A stretch of 35,261 bases of DNA from Octopus bimaculoides (taxonomy: Eukaryota): the NCBI RefSeq assembly GCF_001194135.2, contig NC_068981.1:3118805-3154065 (forward strand), in the 5' to 3' direction. This document shows, piece by piece, positions 3,604-35,261 of this stretch. Each line of letters begins with the position of its first letter. The stretch's first letter is position 1. Under the pieces are notes generated by a model. The model was not told the DNA's origin. It did no database searches and saw nothing but the letters and a program-made list of their open reading frames with translations. The position numbers and the translations under genes were made by a program.

Positions 3604-3959
3604 AAGTAAATCTGAAAACAATACCACATTGAAAAAATATGGATGTTGAGAATGCAATAATTTTTCAAAATGCCATTCACTTGCAACAAGTCACATGAAA
3701 ATAATAATACAAAATTAAAAACAAAACAAACAACTGGTTAAAATAAGAAAATGATTTTATTAGCAGTTAGTACATTTCAGATGAAACAATAACTTGAGAT
3801 TTGCCAATAAAATACAACATACATTGGCCTCTGAAATAACTCTTGTTTAATAACATACCCAGAAGTAATTGAAAAATATACATAATCAAGAGATAAATAT
3901 CAAATGAAAGAGCATGACCTGCTAGAAATAGCATCAACAATTCCCTTACACCATTTCCT

Positions 3960-4265
3960 ACATCATCCTTTAATGCATGTTTTCCATGCTGGCATGGGTT
4001 GGACGGTTTGACAGGGAGCTGGCCAGCTGGAAACTTGCACCAGGTTCCTGTCTGATTCAGCTTGGTTTCTATGGCTATCTGCCTTTCCTAACACCAACCA
4101 CTTTACAGAGTATGTTGGGTACTTCTCATGTGGCCTGGCATGGGTGCTTTTTACATAGCACCACACAGGGTTCTTGCAATGCAAAAGCCCCTTCAGCTGG
4201 AAGAGGGCATTAACAATTTTGCTGTGGTGGATGGGTCTTCTTGAGTACAGCAATGCACCAAGTAT
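3960..4265 (-). repeat. RTE-type 3' tail copy
   Basis: Same tail motifs (CCATGCTGGCATGGGTTGGACGG, CCTTTCCTAACACCAACC). Confidence 0.65.
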
Positions 4266-5296
4266 CTCAGCCCTATATCATCTCTTTTGAACAGACAAGG
4301 GGGTTAAACAAAGATGCCCAAGTCTGGACAATCCTATCTTTATAGGGGCATCTAAAAATACACTATCCAAGTTTTCTTCTTGTTTTTCAAACAGTGGGTT
4401 ATGACTTGAGGGCAGTTTGGCTACTTTGAAATTCTATGGCACTGTAATATTTTAGAAATAAAATCAACAGAGCATTAGAGAAAATTATGCTGAGTTCAAT
4501 TTTGTCTTTCCTGGGTTCTAGAATTCACAAAATAAGTATCATTCAAGTTCTAGTTGACTAAATCTAATCCCAAAATATGCAGCTTGATATCTATGGTAAA
4601 AAAAAAACTCTCATCATCTTCACTTAACATGTTTTCCATACTGGTATGGGATGAATGGTTTAACAGGAGCTGGTATGCTGGACGGCTGCACCAGGCTCCA
4701 ATTGTCTGCTTTGGCATAGTTTCTACGGCTAGGATGCCCTTCCTAACGCTAACTGCTTTACAGAGTGTACTGGGGGCTTTTTACATGAACAGCACAAGTG
4801 ATTTTTATGAAGCCCCAGTACAGGTGCCTTTTATGTGGTAAAATTTGACTTTGGTGGTATTTGAACTCAGAACGTGAGGTTGGGAGAAACGCTGCAAAGC
4901 ATTTTGGTCAGCTTGGAACTATAGTTGCCCAATGTGCTACGCAGAGGGACTGAACCTGGAACTATGTGGTTGGGAAGCAAGCTTTTTACCACACAGCCAC
5001 AGTGAGTTTCAAGCTGACAAATACCCCAACCTTGCCTTCCCAACTCTGTTAATAAGAACACAAAATAGAATTTGCTTCTATATAATTCTTCTTTCTCTGC
5101 CATGAATGTTTAGAAAACCATTTTTAATTTTACTAAGCATGGCAGTTTGCCCTCCATTCCTTACTCAGTCCTCACAGCGGCAGCAGCAGCAGCACCACCT
5201 ATGAGAGATAATGCATTAAACGGTTAAAAACAGTTATCTCCCTTTAAATGAACACCTAGTGAATTATATAATCATTGTTCTTTATGCAATTTACTG

Positions 5297-6005: not shown

Positions 6006-6646
6006 CAGTGCTTCTCGAACTATCTGATGTGGCATACCAGCAGTTTTTTTTTTTCCAATGTGCCAGGGACTGGTAATATTTCTTGGTAATATCAATTTAT
6101 GCCAGAAACAATATATATAATGAATATAATAAAAGTTGACAATTTTTTAAATTCTTTCTTTCTTTTACTTGTTTCAGTCATTTGACTGCGGCCATGCTGG
6201 AGCACTGCCTTTAGTCGAATCAAATCGACCTCAGGACTTATTCTTTGTAAGCCTAGTATTTATTCTATCGGTCTCTTTTGCCGAACCATTAAGTTATGGG
6301 CACCTAAACACACCAGCATTCGTTGTCAAGCGATGTTGGTGGGGACAAACACTGATACACAACATACATATATATATAAAATAATATATATACATATATA
6401 CGACAGGCTTCTTGCCCAAAGTGCCACGCTGTGAGACTGAACCCAGAACCATGTGGCTGGTTAGCAAGCTACTTACCACACAGCCACTCCTGCGCCTATA
6501 TCTTTTACTTATTTTGTAAACAAATAATACAATATTCAATAAGCATTTTATAATGTTTCTTTCTTTTCTGGAAACTCACCACATACCGGCAGCTGATGGC
6601 TCGCAGACCAGCACCGGTCCGCGGGCCACCATTCTGAGTAGCACTG
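6006..6646. mobile_element. hAT (Charlie-like) non-autonomous transposon with nested SINE
   Basis: Imperfect TIRs CAGTGCTTCTC / GAGTAGCACTG; perfect 8-bp TSD GGCTAGAC (5998-6005, 6647-6654). Confidence 0.85.
6161..6510 (-). mobile_element. tRNA-derived SINE (TGGCTGTGTGG head) with alternative 3' tail
   Basis: A-box-like TGGCTGTGTGG and B-box-like GGTTCAGTC on minus; TCTTTTACTT repeated at 6161-6170 and 6501-6510. The same tail recurs at about 18985-19140. Confidence 0.8.
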
Positions 6647-7380: not shown

Positions 7381-8060
7381 CATCATCATCATCGTTTAAT
7401 GTCCGCTTTCCATGCTAGCATGGGTTGGACGATTTGACTGAGGACTGGTGAACCAGATGGCTGCACCAGGCTCCAATCTGATTTGGCAGAGTTTCTACAG
7501 CTGGATGCCCTTCCTAACGCCAACCACTCCGTGAGTGCAATGGGTGCTTTTAAGTGCCACCAGCACGAGTGCCAGTCAGGCAGTACTGGCAACGGCCACG
7601 CTCGAATGTTTTTTTCAGTGCTATATAATATCCAGTTACCATTATGAACTTGGTTGATAGGATTGACTGAAAGGGATCTATAATATTGTATATATAATAG
7701 TAGCATAATACTGATTCGATGTATATTATTTCATATATTCATCATCATCATCATAGTTTAACATCCGCTTTCCATACTGGCATGGGTTGGATGGATTGAC
7801 AGGAGCTGGCCAGCCAGGAAGCTATCCAGACTCTAATTTCTATTGTGGTATGGTTTCTACAGCTGGATACCCTTCCTAATGCCAACTACTCAACAGTGTG
7901 CTGGGTGCTTTTTATGTGCCACCAGCATAGGAGCATTTACACAGCACTGGCACAAGAGCATTTTATGTGGCACCGGCACCTGTAAAAGACAAGCCTGTAT
8001 GTATGGATCACTGATTTTCTTGGCTTGATGCATTTTCTCAAGTACAGCAAATCACCATTG
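7381..8060 (-). repeat. Two adjacent RTE-type 3' tail copies (7381-7605, 7738-8060)
   Basis: Both begin with (CAT)n and contain CTGGATGCCCTTCCTAA. Confidence 0.75.
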
Positions 8061-12039: not shown

Positions 12040-12246
12040 ACACCTGACTGGCTCTTATGCTGGTGGCACGTAAAAGCACCCACTACACTCTTGAAGTGAT
12101 TGGCGTTAGAAAGGGCATCCAGCTGTAGAAACTTTGCCAGATCAAATTGGGGCCTCATGCAGCCTCTGGCTCACCAGTCCTCAGTCAAACCGTCCAACCC
12201 ATGCCAGCATGGAAAGCAGACGTTAAACGATGATGATGATGATGAT
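12040..12246 (+). repeat. RTE-type 3' tail copy
   Basis: GGCACGTAAAAGCACC...GAAGGGCATCCAGCTGTAGAAAC...(GAT)n. Confidence 0.75.
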
Positions 12247-13089
12247 AATTATTATCATCACTTCATATTTGCTTCCCAAGCTGGTATGGGTTGGATAGGT
12301 CACCACAGTCCAAGTCAGTTCTTATCTACAATTACTGCCCTTCCAGATGGGTCAAAGTACCACATCTTGCTTGCATATTTCACATTGGCTTGGAATCAAC
12401 AACTGGGTGCCCTTCCTAACACCAATCCTTTTATGGAGTATGCCAAGTGTCTGTTATCCTGGAAACGGCACTAGCGAGATCATTTCCTTAACTACACAAG
12501 TTTAAAAGGTCCTCTCAACAATTTTAAGGAGTTATTGATGTGAATTTTAGTGTGGTACCAGCTGTAGTGAAGTTGTCAAGTATCCCACAAGAGAAAAGCA
12601 TACAATACTGGTCAATACTCTTACTGTTTGTTCTGAAGAATGTGATTGCTAGAGTTGGTAGAATAGATAGAATTTACAGAAAATAAGCTGGGGTAAAGTA
12701 TTAAAAGATGCCCAAGTATAAAAGGGGCAAATAGTGGCTGGGATGACATTACGAAAGGAAAAGTAGAAAAAATTAGAGTGTTGCCGGCTTGCATACAAAA
12801 AGCATGGAATGATGGAATGTTTGCTGTGAGGAAAAGTACAAGTGATAGGTAGTCCTCATAGCAATGGTAAGAGAATGATGGCAGTGAAGGAGTGCATTGG
12901 ATGCTAACAGATCTGATGCAATTGTTTGTTATTGTTACTCTTACATGGGTGACACACTGCAGTGAACAGGGGTTGGCATATGAGAGGAGCAGTAGATAGA
13001 GACTGAGGAAGTATAAAATGAACAAACGCCCAGAAGTTTGCATCATCATGATATATATATATATCGTTTAATCGTTTAACGTCCGCTTT

Positions 13090-13124
<35 letters not shown>

Positions 13125-14017
13125 NNNNNNNNNNNNNNNNNNNNNNNNNNNNNNNNNNNNNNNNNNNNNNNNNNNNNNNNNNNNNNNNNNNNNNNNNNNN
13201 NNNNNNNNNNNNNNNNNNNNNNNNNNNNNNNNNNNNNNNNNNNNNNNNNNNNNNNNNNNNNNNNNNNNNNNNNNNNNNNNNNNNNNNNNNNNNNNNNNNN
13301 NNNNNNNNNNNNNNNNNNNNNNNNNNNNNNNNNNNNNNNNNNNNNNNNNNNNNNNNNNNNNNNNNNNNNNNNNNNNNNNNNNNNNNNNNNNNNNNNNNNN
13401 NNNNNNNNNNNNNNNNNNNNNNNNNNNNNNNNNNNNNNNNNNNNNNNNNNNNNNNNNNNNNNNNNNNNNNNNNNNNNNNNNNNNNNNNNNNNNNNNNNNN
13501 NNNNNNNNNNNNNNNNNNNNNNNNNNNNNNNNNNNNNNNNNNNNNNNNNNNNNNNNNNNNNNNNNNNNNNNNNNNNNNNNNNNNNNNNNNNNNNNNNNNN
13601 NNNNNNNNNNNNNNNNNNNNNNNNNNNNNNNNNNNNNNNNNNNNNNNNNNNNNNNNNNNNNNNNNNNNNNNNNNNNNNNNNNNNNNNNNNNNNNNNNNNN
13701 NNNNNNNNNNNNNNNNNNNNNNNNNNNNNNNNNNNNNNNNNNNNNNNNNNNNNNNNNNNNNNNNNNNNNNNNNNNNNNNNNNNNNNNNNNNNNNNNNNNN
13801 NNNNNNNNNNNNNNNNNNNNNNNNNNNNNNNNNNNNNNNNNNNNNNNNNNNNNNNNNNNNNNNNNNNNNNNNNNNNNNNNNNNNNNNNNNNNNNNNNNNN
13901 NNNNNNNNNNNNNNNNNNNNNNNNNNNNNNNNNNNNNNNNNNNNNNNNNNNNNNNNNNNNNNNNNNNNNNNNNNNNNNNNNNNNNNNNNNNNNNNNNNNN
14001 NNNNNNNNNNNNNNNNN
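13125..14017. other. Assembly gap (893 N)
   Basis: N run bounded by a (TA)n microsatellite on the left and a repeat on the right. Confidence 1.
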
Positions 14018-15182
14018 GAGCGTGACCATTGCCAGTACAGCCTGACTGGCCTTGTAGGGTTTTCGAGCGAGATCGTTGCCAGTGCCCCTGGACTGGCTCT
14101 TGTGCGGGTGGCACATAAAAGACACCATTTCGAGCGTGGCCGTTTTCGTGCGGGTGACACGTAAAAGCACCCACTACACTCTGAGTGGTTGGCATTAGGA
14201 AGGGCATCCAGCTGTAGAAACTCTGCCAAATTAGATTGGAGCCTGGTGTTGCCATCCGGTTTCACCAGTCCTCAGTCAAATCGTCCAACCCATGCTAGCA
14301 TGGAAAGCGGATGTTAAACGATGATGATGATGATATATACACACACACATATATATGTAATGATTACATTGTTCAATTAAATGGAACCACTTGAAACAGA
14401 TGTACAGCATTATTACTTGACATCTTCTGTAGTTGAGGCTGATGCCAGTGTCACGTAACTGGCCTGCTAAAAGCACTGTTCAATCATTGGGTGATATGCT
14501 GTGTTTGCGAAAACCTGCTGAACTGAGTGAAATTGTAGTAGTGGCCAATGCCAGTGCCGTCTGATTGGCACCCATGCCGGTGGCATGTAAAAAGCACCAT
14601 TTGAGTGTTGGGCCTCATGGAGGGCAGGTGACCAAGACCCTTGGCAATATACCATGCTTGTGTTCATCTATCAAGCCAAGTGAGATTGTAGTCATGGCTG
14701 ATGCCGGTATCAGGTCAATGGCACCTGTGCCAGTGGCATGTAAAAAGCACCCACTACACACTCGGAGTTGTTGGCATTAGGAAGGGCATCCAGCCATAGA
14801 AACCTTGCCAAATGAGATTGAAACCTGGTGCAGCCCCCCCCCCCCAGCTTACAAGTTTTTAGTCAAACTGTCCAACCCATGCCAAGCATGAAAAGTGGAC
14901 ATTAAACAATGATGATGATGATGATTCACACACACACACACACAACAGAATTGATAACCAAAGTGTCACATAAAAAGCATTTGTGCTGGTGCCATGTAAA
15001 AGGCACTAGTGATGGTGCCATGTGAAAAGCACCCAGTACACTGTAAAGAGGTTGGCATTAGGAAGGGCATCCAGTCATAGAAACTAAGTGAAAAACAGAC
15101 TATGTGGGCCCTGGGCTTGCCAACTCCTGTCAAACTATCCAACCCATACCAGCATGGAAAACAGACATTAAATGGTGATGAT
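14018..15182 (+). repeat. Cluster of three RTE-type 3' UTR copies
   Basis: Copies end in (GAT)n at about 14333, 14925 and 15182. Confidence 0.75.
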
Positions 15183-16985: not shown

Positions 16986-17953
16986 TGTAGTGAACACCAC
17001 TCTTTCCCACTGTTATAAATATAAACAAGTGCGGGCGTAGCAGAGAGCAGCCTTCCCCGTCATCACCTGACTGACTATTCTTTGTGCAGGTAAATTATCT
17101 CCACCCGTTCACCCCAGGACGCAAACTAACCAACCATAGCCCCTAATAAGGTCACGTGATAGTGTTTTTCTAATGCTTCTCTGGAGCCTACCTTCAGCTA
17201 TAAATAGCCTGCTAGATACCCGGCAAATTCGTCGCGCTTCAGATCTCCTAAATCTGGCCGCTGGCCACACACACGCGTAACACAGCCAGCCAGTTCCAGC
17301 GACGACATCGACACCATCGTCCAACTACAAGCATCGCCCCCGACGTCGCCAACAGCATCGTCCAACTACGACTACCAGCATCGCCGCCAGCGTCAACATG
17401 ACTCTACACGTACACAAGCTACCAACAGCTAACCGCAGCACTTCTCTTCGATCCTGCTTGTGTGATTCACCTCACCACGAAAATAACAGCCAAGAATTTA
17501 GCCTGTGAAGAACATCTGTATTCAAGAACCCGGGTTGGCATAGAAGCCCTAACATCACGAGTGATCGCTCTGCCCCACACGCCTTAACTTCTTATACGTG
17601 TTACTGACTCTAATCTATACACTGTAACTCTTACATACACATACATGTAAACTCGCACACACTCTTTTGTTTACATGATGGCCAGTCTTATATTGTGTTT
17701 TATTATGTCGCATTCACACACACACAGACATACAGTTTAATGCTCCAATAAATCTTACTGTTATTCATCTCTATCGGTTGAGTTCCTATTGTCTTCCTTA
17801 CTGGCATTTACGAATTCTCTATGTCATTGAAGTATAACATATATATATCATTTGATATATTTTTGTGTTCGACTGTGTGACGCGTTTAATAAAGGAGCTC
17901 TGTTTTTCCATTCGTCACCATTTCTCCTTTTGGTTCGCACGGTCGTTCTTACA
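16986..17953 (+). mobile_element. Solo LTR (probably Gypsy-type)
   Basis: TG...CA termini (TGTAGTGAAC / GTTCTTACA), 4-bp TATA TSD, TATAAATA at 17199-17206, AATAAA near 17748 and 17888. CpG-rich, no internal domain. Confidence 0.65.
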
Positions 17954-17957
17954 TATA

Positions 17958-18346
17958 TCATCATCATCATCGTTTAACGTCCGCTTTCCATGCTAGCATG
18001 GGTTGGACGATTTGACTGAGGACTGGTGAAACCGGATGGCAACACCAGGCTCCAATCTAAATTTGGCAGAGTTTCTACAGCTGGATGCCCTTCCTAACGC
18101 CAACCACTCAGAGAGTGTAGTAGGTGCTTTTACGTGTCACCTGCACGAAGGCCAGTCAGGCGATACTGGCAACGGCCACGCTCGAAATGGTGTCTTTTAT
18201 GTGCCACCCGCACAAGCCAGTCCAGGGGCACTGGCAACGTTCTCGCTCGAAAATCCTACGGAAGCCAGTCAGACGGTACTGGCAATGGCCACGCTCAAAA
18301 TAGTGCATCTTATGTGCCACCCGCACAAGAGCCAGTCCTGGGGCAC
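17958..18346 (-). repeat. Young RTE-type 3' UTR copy with internal 114-bp tandem unit
   Basis: Near-identical (reverse complement) to 14018-14333 and 34916-35261; units start at 18147 and 18261. Confidence 0.85.
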
Positions 18347-18596
18347 ATATATATATATATTCCACACACACACACTTATGTACATATATCTCGGAGTTGT
18401 TGGCATTAGGAAGGGCACCCAGTCATAGAAACTATGCCAAATCAGACTGGTGCAGCCCCTCAGCTTACCAGCTCTGGTCAAACTGTCCAACCCATGCTAG
18501 CTTGGAGAACAAATGCTAAATGATGAGGATGATGATATGTGTGTGTGTGACACCACACACATATATATATAATATATATATATGCAAACATGTGTA

Positions 18597-22770: not shown

Positions 22771-25588
<2,818 letters not shown>

Positions 25589-30491: not shown

Positions 30492-30972
30492 ATAGTAAAA
30501 TATTTAGAAATAATATATTTCTAAATCTCTAGCAGAATTATGCAGTAGATACAATGAAGTAGTTGTATGCTGTCAACTTAATGTGACAATCCCCTGAAGG
30601 GAATAATACTACTGTTGGTTAGACCTAGGAAGCTGCACCGCTTCCTGTCGGCCTTGACACATTTCCTGTGTCTTTATGTTCACAAGGAGGAGACAAGCAC
30701 CTCCGCCCAGCTAAGCCTGCATCCAGAGACATGTTTCTGAGTCTTTGCTACTCCACACTGAGGACGAGCAAAGACTCAGAAACATGTCTCTGGATGCAGG
30801 CTTAGCTGGGCGGAGGTGCTTGTCTCCTCCTTGTGAACATAAGGACACAGGAAATGTGTCAAGGCCGACAGGAAGCGGTGCAGCTTCCTAGGTCTAACCA
30901 ACAGTAGTATTATTCCCTTCAGGGGACTGTCACATTAAGTTGACAGCATACAACTACTTCATAGTAAAATAT
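30492..30972. mobile_element. Inverted-duplicate Penelope-like insertion with hammerhead motif and 12-bp TSD
   Basis: Arms 30554-30749 and 30767-30962 (196 bp, 2 mismatches) around a 17-nt spacer. Direct repeat ATAGTAAAATAT at 30492-30503 and 30961-30972. The left copy has an extra ~50-nt tail. Hammerhead core on + at 30752-30794. Confidence 0.7.
30752..30794 (+). ncRNA. Minimal type-I hammerhead ribozyme motif (degenerate)
   Basis: Stem I TCCACA/TCTGGA (one C-C mismatch), core CTGAGGA, stem II GAG-caaaga-CTC (C/A mismatch at its base), GAAA, palindromic stem III ACATGT, cleavage triplet GTC. Confidence 0.65.
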
Positions 30973-32018
30973 ATATTTTATATATTCTTATATCATCATT
31001 CTTTGGCATCTGTTGACCAGGGCTGGAAGGCTGCACCAGACTCCAGTCTGATTTGGCATGGTTTTCTACGGTTGGATGCTCTTCCTAATGCCAACCACTC
31101 TGAGAGTGTAATGGGTGCTTTTACATGCCACTGGCACGGGTGCCATTTGTGTGACACCAGTATCTGCCACGACTTAGATTTTACTTGGTTTGATGGGGTA
31201 TAAGTGTCTTCTTAAGCTTTACTTCTTTTTTTCTTTTTCATAAAAGAATTTAACTTGCTGCCCTGAATTTCTCATGGCTGTGTTTATAATCTTTGTTTTT
31301 TGCTTAAGGTAAAATAAGGCATGTTTCAATAAAAAAGAAATTAAAACAGAAATTTAAGATAATGATGTTTAATGACCTAATTTTCAGCATTTGTTTTGCT
31401 TGCTACTCCAGTCATAAAATTTCTTTTCTGTAAACTTTTAAGATTTTTTTACTTCTCAAAATGAGTTGGCAATTACTTTTACATAATAAAAGAGAAATAA
31501 TAATGGCTCTTAACCTACTGTTAGCATATATTTGTTTCCCTTAGTCACAATTTCATTTATTAATATGTAATTACTTCTACATGAGAAATGACAAAAATCT
31601 GTAATAATGATGTTTGATATTTAAGTATATATTTGTGTCACTTAGTCACAACTTTATTAATAAAATCAATTTCTCTTCTATAACTTATGAAATATTTCTG
31701 TTTGCTTTTCAAAATAATTCGGAAATTTATAATTACTTTTACATGCGAAATGAAAAGCAAATCTATAATAATTGAGGAGTGAACTGATACTCCCACACAT
31801 GACTGTCAGTGGAGTGGATGAGTCTTATAAATGGATGATCCAGTAGACAGTTGAGGTTGAACTCTGAGAGCATTAGTCTTATTGTTTCTATCGCAGTATT
31901 GGATTGCTTAACGTTTATAAGATAACCAACTCTTGTCACATTTCTTATTGTTATCCGGTTATATTTGGTACTGTGATATATTGTTATACACATCATATGT
32001 TATCACTGACAAAATAAC

Positions 32019-32517
32019 AATAATGATGTTACAGTTCTATATTTAAGAGATGAGGAATTATGCACATTATTTACATTATTTACATTTGACGGATATTTGT
32101 CCTCATCTTGTTTGTTGTTAACACAACGTTTCAGCTGATATACCTTTCATCAGGTGTCTTGGGGAAATTCCAAACCTGGGTTCTCATTCCTAAGGTATTT
32201 TTCGATGTTATTATTATTATTGTTGTTATTATTATTGTTCATGTCACTGCTTGGAATCGAACTTGGAATCTTGAGGTTAGTAGCCCGCACTCTTAACCAC
32301 TACGCCATATGCCCAAGCAGTGACCTGAACAATAATAATAATAATAATCATAATAATTATAATAATAATAACATCGAAAAATACCATAGGAATGAGAATC
32401 CAAGTTCGAAATTTCCCCAAGACACCTGATGAAGGCTGGAGGGTATATCAGCTGAAACGTTGTGTTAACAACAAACAAGATGAGGACAAATATTCATCAA
32501 ATGTAAATAATGATGTT
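32019..32517 (-). mobile_element. tRNA-headed SINE-like element with hammerhead tail, plus an inverted 5'-truncated copy; 12-bp TSD
   Basis: Minus copy 32031-32314 has A box TGGCGTAGTGG (32297-32307), B box GTTCGATTCC (32253-32262), an (AAT)n linker and a tail. Plus copy 32313-32505 lacks the head. AATAATGATGTT is duplicated at 32019-32030 and 32506-32517. Confidence 0.8.
32421..32466 (+). ncRNA. Minimal type-I hammerhead ribozyme motif
   Basis: Stem I GACAC/GTGTT, core CTGATGA(+A), stem II GGCTG-gagggtatat-CAGCT, GAAA, palindromic stem III ACGT, triplet GTT. The inverted copy at 32120-32158 has a 7-nt deletion in stem II. Confidence 0.7.
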
Positions 32518-33727
32518 TAATAACCAAATTCTGGTATATATTTATTAGTTTGCCAAATTATTGCCATTGTGCTGTTGAACTCCTAAAATGTGAGTCACAA
32601 CCGTTCTTTGATTTTTGTTTTTTTGAAGCACATACATTGCAATGCCATATATATCCGTGGACCAACAACTTATGACCATAGATGGTTACATTGGTGGACA
32701 ATGACATATTCTTTCATATTATCCACATCACTCACTTTTATATTTGTCTCCTCAGAATTATCTTTTCCACGGGTTTCATTGAATAACATTCAAGCCATGA
32801 CATCACATCTCACAGATAGGTAATATCATGATGCCATTTTTGGAGTTGCTTATGATGTTGAGGACATCCTTAATACAAATTCCATAAAGCTTGCATTATC
32901 ACATCTTGAAGTTTGACTTGGGCCCTTATCCCATTTGTGTGCATGTATGTACATATGCTTGTATGTATGTATGTGTAGAGCCCTCGCTTGGCCCTACCTG
33001 TGATTTGAAATCGAATCTAGAAATTCGGACTACTGTTCTATCAAGAAGGAACATAGGTCTATGTGTTTTCCACCTGATTCTTGGCCTTTTCTATGCCATG
33101 AAAAGTTGAAATAGATAATGAGTGACCTACATTAATTTACCCATTGTTTAAACAACATACCTCTTTTACTGGCTGGGCTACATACTTATAAATACAAATA
33201 GTTCTAAGCAGATCACCAGAGGCAGGCAGACATCAGAGGGAGAGAGAAAGCAATCAGCCACTGTGATACAACTTTCCTCTGCTGTCTCTCACTTTCTCAC
33301 TGGCTCATCTTTCTCTTCTACATCATCACTGTCTCTTTCTCTATCTGCTGCTTAAATGACCTGGGACATGCAAGTCTTACGCTATCCATTTATACACAAA
33401 AATATAACACCCTTTATCTTGCATGCTTTTGACTTACATTATACATTCTTGCCCACCGTGGTGTGGCTATATATATTAAGTAACGGTAAATAAAATATGT
33501 TATCTACAACTTCAACCATTGTCCTTATTCATTGAAGTCCACCACAACATCACCATTTTCGATTGCAACATAAACAACCCATTACATTCAGGTAAACGCT
33601 GTTACATTTGGTGACTCCATCTAACTATGTTACACTTGACTTCCCAACGTAAAGATCCATTAACCATTACATTTGGTGACACCACCATCAAAAAACTTAT
33701 GTATGTACGAACATTTGTATGTGTGTA

Positions 33728-34220: not shown

Positions 34221-34839
34221 CCAACCTCTATGTACATAATGCTTGTATTATGTGCAGTGTCACCTTGACAAGCAAAGAACACAAAAAACACTTAACATCT
34301 TGGAAGTAGGTGTTTGGATCAATATGTTGGTTGAAACTTAATGCTATTCATATAATGTAAACAGCTGGGAGAGAAATTAGTGAAATAGGATTCATTAACA
34401 CTTCCAATGTAACACATGTATGTGTGTGTGTGTGCGTGTGTGTGTGTATGTATGTGTGTGTGTGTATGTATATATATATGGAGTAGTTGGCATTAGGAAG
34501 GGTATCCAGTTATAGAAAACCATGCCAAATTAGACTGGATCTTGGTGCAGCCTTCCAACGTGCCAACCCAGTCAAGCCATCCATCCCATGCCAGCATGGA
34601 CAACTGACATTAAATGATGATGATGTATATATATATATATATATGTATCCAATTTCTTAAAATTGGGTACATTTTAATTTTTCTTTTATATGTTTCGGTT
34701 TTTGAAAAACCTTATCAAAAATATGTACTAAAATGGAATATGTAAAGAGAAAAGAACTATTAATAAAATTAAATTCAAATTAAGATTAACATTCATAGTT
34801 TACTTTCCTTTTCCTGCAAGAGCACGTGATAATATCCGT

Positions 34840-35261
34840 TAGTTCTGGTGGCATGACAAGTTCAACTGACTGTGACCACAAATTACTACTATCATGCGTG
34901 AGAAGACCCGGCAAGCCAAGTAAGATTGTTGCCAGTGCCCCTGGACTGGCTCTTGTGCGGGTGGCACATGAGATGCACCATTTTGAGCGTGGCCGTTGCC
35001 AGTACCGCCTGACTGGCTCCCGTAGGATTTTCGAGCGAGATCGTTGCCAGTGCCCCTGGACTGGCTTGTGCGGGTGGCACATAAAAGACACCATTTCAAG
35101 CGTGGCCGTTTTCGTGAGGGTAACACGTAAAAGCACCCACTACACTCTCTGAGTGGTTGGCGTTAGGAAGGGCATCCAGCTGTAGAAACTCTGCCAAATT
35201 AGATTGGAGCCTGGTGTTGCCATCCGGTTTCACCAGTCCTCAGTCAAATCGTCCAACCCAT
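34840..35261 (+). mobile_element. RTE ORF end plus 3' UTR with tandem modules
   Basis: GAGAAGACCCGGCAAGCCAAGTAA (EKTRQAK*), similar to the AAGAAGACC ORF end near 16415, followed by the shared tail. Truncated by the window edge. Confidence 0.75.

Follow-up and report, generated by a model that had tools for sequence, protein, structure and literature searches.

Two copies of a short interspersed nuclear element (SINE) lie fused head to head in a stretch of the Octopus bimaculoides genome (CM046601.1 of GCA_001194135.2, about 3,118,805-3,154,065, at ~3.12-3.15 Mb). The whole 35-kb stretch (35,261 nt) is referred to here as the window, and positions are counted from its first nucleotide. On balance, this composite is probably the product of one retrotransposition of a tRNA-derived SINE of the RNA polymerase III (Pol III) type that was mobilised by a Penelope-like element (PLE). 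Mobilisation by a PLE is the best-supported mechanism because the anatomy of the composite, the positions of its ends and its AT-rich target all match published PLE behaviour. The best explanation for the 3' module of the element, approximately 120-180 nt, appears to be that it mimics the pseudo-long terminal repeat (pseudo-LTR)/5' open reading frame (ORF) region of a PLE, including a minimal type-I hammerhead motif. SINEs are usually regarded as relying on the enzymes of long interspersed nuclear elements (LINEs), while PLEs are a separate class of retroelement, the mechanism of which is only beginning to be understood.

Anatomy of the two copies

The full-length copy is encoded on the minus strand (Table 1). 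Its head of 72 nt reads GGGCATATGGCGTAGTGGTTAAGAG...AGTTCGATTCCAAGCAGTGAC, with GGGCAT... at the 5' end. When the Pol III box consensus sequences were searched as regular expressions, the A box (TGGCGTAGTGG, 32297-32307, sense positions 8-18) was an exact fit to TRGCNNAGTGG, and the B box (AGTTCGATTCC, 32253-32263, sense positions 52-62) fitted GGTTCGANNCC at 10 of 11 positions. The A box and the B box are 34 nt apart, a tRNA-like spacing. A body of 179 nt follows the linker. The first-pass annotation, which was made from the sequence alone, had described a minus-strand element with a tRNA-like head, a perfect A box and a B box, and then an (AAT)n linker and a tail with a hammerhead core, and all of these parts are present in 32031-32314. 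The copy is non-coding, each reading frame being interrupted by a stop somewhere. Its 3' end has neither poly(A) nor a microsatellite, and the sense strand of both copies lacks TTTT, the first T4 run being 17 nt beyond the 3' end.

ARAGORN called no tRNA in the head, and the Rfam tRNA model found no match in an 86-nt slice of the head at E ≤ 10. The head is identical at 51 of 72 positions to a tRNA-Arg(ACG) sequence, the best match among five tRNAs, a comparison that serves as a lead only; as such a lead, it suggests that the head was probably derived from tRNA-Arg. Three families of tRNA-derived SINEs from octopus, OK, OR1 and OR2, were reportedly described by Ohshima and Okada in 1994, the OR families possibly being derived from tRNA-Arg. 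The element would resemble these families in its octopus host, its putative tRNA-derived head and the possible tRNA-Arg origin. No hammerhead was reported for OK, OR1 or OR2 in the literature searched.

The second copy is inverted and partial. It opens at 32313 with CCAAGCAGTGAC, its first 60 nt of head are missing, and its linker is longer than that of the minus-strand copy. The first-pass annotation had stated that this copy lacks the head and the last ~45 nt of the tail. The final 12 nt of head sequence are in fact retained, but the loss of the tail stands. It amounts to 43 nt or, if a 9-nt internal duplication is aligned in its other register, to 34 nt, which would place the one-sided tail of the full-length copy at 32031-32064. 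The proposed head-to-head fusion through CC at 32313-32314 was evident both from direct reading, the CC being common to the partial copy and to the GGGCAT... 5' end of the minus-strand copy, and from an inverted-repeat search, in which the arms of one repeat start at 32313. In the same search, the arms 32074-32149 and 32437-32512 were 95% complementary and the arms 32146-32239 and 32340-32433 were 89% complementary. Approximately 200 nt of the element occur in both orientations. The bodies of the two copies are identical at 128 of 136 positions (7 transitions and 1 transversion), with one additional 7-nt indel. An Rfam match to MIR1222 was rejected, as it merely reflects the inverted repeat.

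A single insertion with one target site duplication

The composite is flanked by a 12-mer, AATAATGATGTT, which the first-pass annotation had taken as a single 12-bp target site duplication (TSD) that brackets both copies. The 12-mer does flank the composite, but 7 of its 12 bases (AATAATG) double as element sequence, therefore only 5 nt (ATGTT) are unambiguously duplicated and 12 is the maximum. The junction of the minus-strand copy reads ...AAATGTAAATAATG/TAAATAATGTGC..., with the slash at the boundary. In addition, the 12-mer is found a third time at 31603, because the target of the SINE lies in a diverged local repeat unit. This unit, of ~100-245 bp and containing ATAATGATGTTT(A/G)AT, is present at 31346-31760 and in the flanks of the composite at 32011-32030 and 32518-32570. 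The copy of the 12-mer at 31603 belongs to this unit and was rejected as the mark of another insertion.

Removal of the composite (32031-32517) restored a unit that aligned without a break across the junction with two paralogues of that unit (31312-31412 and 31557-31660). The motif is present once in each, followed by TTTAAT or TTTGAT, and on this alignment both act as unfilled sites. It is highly improbable that the composite was built by two separate events, whether independent insertions of neighbouring SINEs or one insertion followed by a replication-based inverted duplication. Such a history could account for arms that differ by 6% in the body, by the 7-nt indel and in linker length, and local repeats such as that with the 12-mer at 31603 could imitate a TSD. 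However, the restored unit is colinear with both unfilled paralogues, the full-length copy lacks a TSD that brackets it alone, the other copy lying at its right flank, and the partial copy has no 3' end, which target-primed insertion alone does not yield. The ratio of 7 transitions to 1 transversion between the arms is also as expected of decay after a shared origin. The best reading of the composite is thus one insertion event with a duplication of 5-12 bp, because the restored site is continuous with the paralogues, the full-length copy lacks a TSD of its own and the partial copy lacks a 3' end. The earlier proposal that a single event made both copies agrees with this reconstruction of the empty site.

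A minimal hammerhead motif in the element body

A descriptor was built on the published features of the minimal hammerheads of PLEs, namely an additional nucleotide after A9, a long helix II, a helix I of 4-5 bp and a palindromic 15.2-16.2 pair in the absence of loop III (PMC4209133). It consisted of CUGANGA, 0-1 unpaired nucleotide, a helix II of at least 4 bp with a loop of 3-14 nt, GAAA, a palindromic helix III with a loop of 0-4 nt, U16.1 and H17, and a helix I of at least 4 bp. On both strands of the whole window, the sole match was in the plus-strand copy, and the minus-strand copy passed when helix II was relaxed to 2 bp. A chance origin of the match in a tail of 200 nt is very unlikely, because there were no matches in 400 shuffled windows and none in 200 Mb of composition-matched, first-order Markov sequence.

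The motif of the plus-strand copy reads GACAC-CUGAUGA-A-GGCUGG-(8 nt)-UCAGCU-GAA-ACGU-U/GUGUU, with the predicted cut at the slash. Helix I (GACAC/GUGUU) is 5 bp, CUGAUGA is at 32426-32432 and is followed by an unpaired A at 32433 (a bulge after A9), and helix II (GGCUGG/UCAGCU) is 6 bp, two of which are G.U, with a loop of 8 nt. The GAA is at 32454-32456 and the ACGU palindrome, which could form helix III only in a dimer, is at 32457-32460. U17 is at 32461, and the cut is predicted just after it in the descriptor register, where the first-pass annotation had placed it for this copy. The full-length copy retains intact core boxes and an intact helix I, and a 7-nt gap (GGCUGGA is missing) leaves helix II with 2 bp. 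Apart from this indel the two copies are identical in the hammerhead core, and the catalytic core (C3-A9, G12-A14, A15.1-U16.1 and H17) is in register in both, as would be expected from the annotated hammerhead core in the tail. The 7-nt difference looks more like a deletion in the full-length copy than an insertion in the plus-strand copy, because the missing nucleotides are bounded by GG repeats.

Two ways of checking the motif had been proposed, the Rfam model RF00163 and a minimal hammerhead descriptor, and they diverged: the descriptor matches at 32421-32466, but Rfam reports no hammerhead in the SINE copies at the gathering score. The sole weak Rfam matches were to models of C/D-box small nucleolar RNAs (snoRNAs), all well under threshold, and only the plus-strand copy retains an intact motif. 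These results would fit an alternative in which the CUGAUGA...CUGA boxes are C/D-box-like snoRNA debris, or without function, and not a ribozyme. This is improbable, as the boxes are ~20 nt apart with no terminal stem, unlike those of a snoRNA, and helices I and II, the bulged A and the ACGU palindrome are all in hammerhead register.

The 46-nt core of the plus-strand copy has a hammerhead fold of -10.1 kcal/mol versus a minimum free energy of -10.7 kcal/mol. For the motif of the full-length copy, the hammerhead-like fold is -2.5 versus a minimum of -6.0 kcal/mol. In a longer RNA context the hammerhead fold is outcompeted by the 8-nt palindrome UCAGCUGA (32448-32455), which overlaps the 3' strand of helix II and G12-A13, and by a GUUGU-GUUA-ACAAC hairpin (32458-32473), which overlaps the 3' strand of helix I. 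Folding energy, as modelled here, neither supports nor refutes a hammerhead.

Two other features of this region were observed. The sequence after the hairpin is AC-rich (AACAACAAACAAG) and recalls the AC-rich stem-loop at the start of reverse transcription in the Anolis PLE. One sense frame is open from the hammerhead region to the 3' end, at 32031-32150 on the minus strand and 32424-32517 on the plus strand (…KVYQLKRCVNNKQDEDKYPSNVNNVNNVHNSSSLKYRTVT), though its length is statistically not unusual. PLE ORFs start inside the hammerhead, so this open frame could be a remnant of the N-terminus of a partner element.

Insertion geometry and the choice of enzyme

The geometry of the insertion is that of nicks 12 bp apart in the AT-rich unit, with the bottom strand cut after CATTATT. 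The terminal 3' end of the element is joined to the plus-strand end ...GATGTT-3', and an internal site is joined to the minus-strand end ...AACATCATTATT-3', the last 7 nt of which (CATTATT) are complementary to AAUAAUG of the element RNA. One copy runs from the terminal 3' end to the 5' end, while the other starts 34-43 nt inward and stops 60 nt before the 5' end. Relative to the predicted cut, one copy has its 3' end at +44 to +51 nt and the other at +94 nt, with 34-43 nt between the two ends. Each copy is antisense to the element on its own strand, and the two meet at the CC/GG overlap. Read directly, the sequence therefore shows cDNA on both target strands, with starts separated by that interval and a 2-nt microhomology that resolves the junction. 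At the outer start site, no homology to the target is required.

In PLE insertions, an inverted 5'-truncated copy is typically found beside the 5' end, and a tail of 30-40 bp is found at one end only (PMC8557442). Composites of PLEs in rotifers have TSDs of 8-10 bp and a 31-bp tail, and PLE pseudo-LTRs alone are enough in cis for the mobilisation of foreign sequence in trans (PMC3846280). The purified Poseidon protein of Anolis nicks and extends both strands of an AT-rich target, with a preference for 5'-ATT-3', and there are two start sites of reverse transcription, the interval between them being the tail (PMC11167929). One of the starts is 111-118 nt into the ORF, the hammerhead cut site being 26 nt into the ORF, and hammerhead cleavage was dispensable for insertion, the uncleaved RNA being the main template (PMC11167929). 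A one-sided tail together with the extension of both strands has been described as PLE-specific (PMC11167929), and minimal hammerheads occur in the pseudo-LTRs of PLEs (PMC4209133). The premises of the first-pass annotation, that minimal hammerheads mark pseudo-LTRs and that inverted pseudo-LTRs with a one-sided tail are typical of Penelope, agree with these reports (PMC4209133, PMC3846280, PMC8557442). The in vitro study of Poseidon from 2024 (PMC11167929) strengthens the fit to PLEs further.

The octopus composite resembles Penelope and Poseidon insertions in its head-to-head, inverted, 5'-truncated copy, its one-sided tail of 30-40 nt and its short TSD (Arkhipova 2013, PMC3846280; Craig 2021, PMC8557442; Frangieh 2024, PMC11167929), as well as in an AT-rich target cut after ATT, priming from both strands and starts located tens of nucleotides downstream of the hammerhead. 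Rotifer PLEs have TSDs of 8-10 bp, and that of the octopus composite, at up to 12 bp, slightly exceeds them. Unlike Penelope and Poseidon, the mobilised unit here is a SINE without an ORF, and the inner start site has 7 nt (AATAATG) in common with the target.

In L1 twin priming, the inverted and direct segments are adjacent, essentially non-overlapping parts of one RNA. This bears on an alternative that we consider rather unlikely, in which the element is an ordinary LINE-dependent SINE with an RTE, CR1, L2 or Dong-R4 partner, the composite is a twin-priming or template-switch accident, the hammerhead-like motif is a coincidence or a relic, and the tail is a LINE 3' untranslated region. The exact complementarity of the primer end CATTATT-3' to the internal AAUAAUG and the 2-nt microhomology at the junction are signatures of twin priming. 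The homology at the inner site is the main argument for an L1-like accident, because the starts of PLE reverse transcription are reported not to be homologous to the cleaved target (PMC11167929). Octopus SINEs have also generally been assigned LINE partners, LINEs are abundant in octopus genomes (PMC13282606, PMC8967140), and no hammerhead was identified by Rfam. Against a LINE partner, ~200 nt are present here in both orientations, unlike in L1 twin priming, and the element ends without the poly(A) or microsatellite. A full match to the minimal hammerhead descriptor is expected less than once per 200 Mb, and the one-sided tail of 34-43 nt with extension of both strands has been described as specific to PLEs (PMC11167929).

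Several observations besides the homology at the inner site weigh against mobilisation by a PLE. The case is built on one locus only, and the stop-to-stop segments of the window included no reverse transcriptase (RT) ORF or PLE ORF. Helix II is missing from the only full-length copy, and the 10.1-11.1 pair in both copies is G.U (A-U without the bulge), not the conserved G-C. The Rfam hammerhead models gave no match at E ≤ 10, even for a 66-nt slice, with scores below about 7 bits; such a result would be expected if loop III is absent, although no positive control stands behind the comparison. The folding energy is not unusual (z = -1.1), and the open frame through the tail had no protein database match.

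Further copies of the element

There was no other copy of the SINE in the window and none in three related contigs. Logan contigs SRR11869391 and SRR11869394, which belong to the closest relative and are ~90-95% identical, stop 3 kb before the SINE site, and in an ENA contig (L003) the exons of the neighbouring BiP gene alone were conserved, the SINE copy being absent. Translated frames of the SINE had zero matches in a collection of 5.8 billion proteins, and two conserved 20-22-mers, scanned as exact patterns, also gave 0 matches in collections of metagenomes, viruses and prokaryote genomes.

An exhaustive HMMER search with the ORF across the junction gave a single match, a protein of 109 aa (P0121, UniParc UPI0006952653). 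Its C-terminal 42 residues, ...KIPSSIPGCDLNNNNNNNNNDKKNIGKYLRNENPGSKFPQDT-stop, are the same frame of another copy of the SINE, which extends from the B box across the linker and into the body, and stops at CC-UGA, where the hammerhead box has UGAUGA. This protein probably reflects either an exonised SINE or an artefact of gene modelling. Because its translation passes from the head (at the B-box end) through the linker into the body, these three parts co-occur at least once elsewhere.

Active Penelope families are present in octopus genomes, together with about 900 families of SINEs that are mostly unclassified, and the unclassified families account for ~11.6% of the O. vulgaris genome (PMC13282606). 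No paper that ties cephalopod SINEs to hammerheads was found in the literature search. The first-pass annotation had proposed a Penelope-mobilised, self-cleaving SINE family in cephalopods. The anatomy, the inverted partial copy, the single TSD and the one-sided tail are consistent with that proposal, and the only sign of a family is one protein-level trace of a third copy. The cephalopod host is O. bimaculoides, and the BiP protein encoded in the window is identical to XP_014785400.1.

Comparison with other hammerhead-bearing elements

The motif is similar to the minimal type-I hammerheads of PLEs (Cervera & de la Pena 2014, PMC4209133) in its CUGAUGA and GAAA cores, the lack of a loop III, the palindromic 15.2-16.2 pair (ACGU) and, in the plus-strand copy, the unpaired nucleotide after A9, the 5-bp helix I and the 6-bp helix II, and also in that pairs are found on opposite strands 100-700 bp apart. 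It differs in the G.U at 10.1-11.1 where PLEs have G-C, and in its location, which is not beside an RT ORF but inside an element of 284 nt whose Pol III head is of the tRNA type.

The SMalpha and Sjalpha elements of Schistosoma (Ferbeyre 1998; Laha 2000; PMC6765202) are likewise short non-autonomous retroposons that combine Pol III transcription with a type-I hammerhead. In SMalpha, however, the hammerhead is canonical and active, the copies are largely in tandem arrays and cleavage frees monomers (PMC6765202), whereas the octopus element has a minimal, dimer-type motif in a dispersed copy. With its promoter 190 nt upstream of the predicted cut, cleavage in the octopus element would strip the priming region. 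Non-LTR retrozymes of animals and short non-autonomous Penelope elements (PMC7229834; bioRxiv 10.64898/2026.07.22.740005; PMC6685494) are also non-autonomous, hammerhead-bearing and thought to depend on PLEs. Retrozymes are tandem repeats of 170-400 nt with circular RNAs and no Pol III head, in contrast to the single dispersed octopus element with A and B boxes. The head-to-tail tandem array of retrozymes and SMalpha is not the arrangement in the window, where the two copies are inverted. SMalpha/Sjalpha, the retrozymes and the short non-autonomous Penelope elements are the closest precedents, and none of them unites a tRNA-type head, a minimal PLE hammerhead and a PLE insertion architecture.

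Genomic setting

The composite is 6.4 kb downstream of a complete gene for BiP/GRP78 (HSPA5), at 22771-25588 on the plus strand, which is spliced from six coding exons and encodes 658 aa with KDEL at the C-terminus. The stop-to-stop segments of the window consist of the BiP exons and repeat-derived frames only, the longest frame outside BiP being at most 153 aa. An abundant, GC-richer repeat family has many copies in the window, in both orientations, some of which are 95-99% identical to each other, and a different tRNA-like head (…GGTTCAGTCCC…) is present at four positions. Both look like common octopus SINEs. An assembly gap of 893 N (13125-14017) is within a cluster of repeats. Approximately 1.1 kb upstream of the composite is a near-perfect palindrome of 417 bp (30550-30966), with arms of 208 nt each (30550-30757 and 30759-30966) that are 97% complementary and separated by a 1-nt spacer. 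This may be a foldback element, an element resembling a miniature inverted-repeat transposable element (MITE), or another head-to-head insertion; the hammerhead descriptor had zero matches inside it.

Table 1. Positions of the SINE composite, its parts and other features in the window
Feature	Position	Strand	Basis or remark
Left TSD copy, AATAATGATGTT	32019-32030	+	Exact 12-mer also at 32506-32517
Right TSD copy	32506-32517	+	Homology to the element ends with its first 7 nt (AATAATG)
Full-length SINE copy (head, linker, body, tail; 284 nt)	32031-32314	-	
Putative tRNA-derived head, sense 1-72	32243-32314	-	Pol III box consensus match
(AAT)n-rich linker of full-length copy	32210-32242	-	
One-sided tail, 3'-terminal 43 nt, full-length copy only	32031-32073	-	Pairwise alignment of copies
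Degenerate minimal hammerhead motif of full-length copy	32120-32158	-	Descriptor with helix II of at least 2 bp; predicted cut 32125/32124
CC/GG 2-nt microhomology at head-to-head junction	32313-32314	.	Direct reading, arm start at 32313
Inverted partial copy (last 12 nt of head, linker, body; 3'-truncated at AATAATG)	32313-32512	+	
Linker of partial copy	32325-32369	+	
Body of partial copy	32370-32512	+	
Minimal type-I hammerhead motif of plus-strand copy	32421-32466	+	Descriptor match
BiP coding exons	22771-22913, 23014-23493, 23590-23744, 23864-24099, 24212-24361, 24776-25588	+	Splicing, match to XP_014785400.1
GC-richer repeat copies	1-435, 3955-4102, 7381-7890, 12043-12318, 14061-14875, 17953-18545, 31024-31177, 34477-35261, others	both	
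Different tRNA-like head (…GGTTCAGTCCC…)	231-305, 2614-2688, 4924-4998, 6411-6485		

Proposed mechanism and implications

In the proposed mechanism, Pol III would transcribe the SINE from the head into the flanking T run, and the RT/GIY-YIG protein of a PLE would bind the 3' module, which would mimic the hammerhead and RT-initiation region of the PLE itself. The protein would then nick both strands of the target and prime on two RNAs. PLE proteins of this kind are known to nick and extend both strands and to begin reverse transcription at two sites, 30-40 nt apart, that lie about 85-92 nt past the point of hammerhead cleavage. Both inserted copies would derive from uncleaved RNA, and the 7-nt gap in helix II of the full-length copy would be a later deletion. 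Self-cleavage as the functional point of the motif is doubtful, because the cut would remove 94 nt with both cDNA start sites and because both copies run past the cut. A role of the hammerhead region mainly as part of a protein-recognition module, rather than as a processing ribozyme, is more likely, since a cut at 190 nt from the 5' end would leave both start sites separated from the part that contains the promoter.

A wider proposal can be put forward only tentatively, and we rate it as possible but somewhat short of probable: that some SINEs of octopus genomes, tRNA-headed and transcribed by Pol III, form a class that parasitises PLEs instead of LINEs by means of a module that mimics the hammerhead and RT-initiation region of PLEs. 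If true, this would be the first clear class of PLE-dependent SINEs. It would mean that PLEs also support a Pol III-driven parasite, and it would link minimal animal hammerheads to a defined non-autonomous element. Double-strand priming from two start sites, lately reconstituted in vitro for the Anolis PLE, has left a natural record at this locus, and the element of ~280 nt would provide a natural minimal substrate for dissecting target-primed reverse transcription by PLEs on both strands. For octopods, such a class could explain part of the large and mostly unclassified expansion of SINEs, and would offer a route for classifying some of the hundreds of unclassified SINE families of O. vulgaris (PMC13282606).

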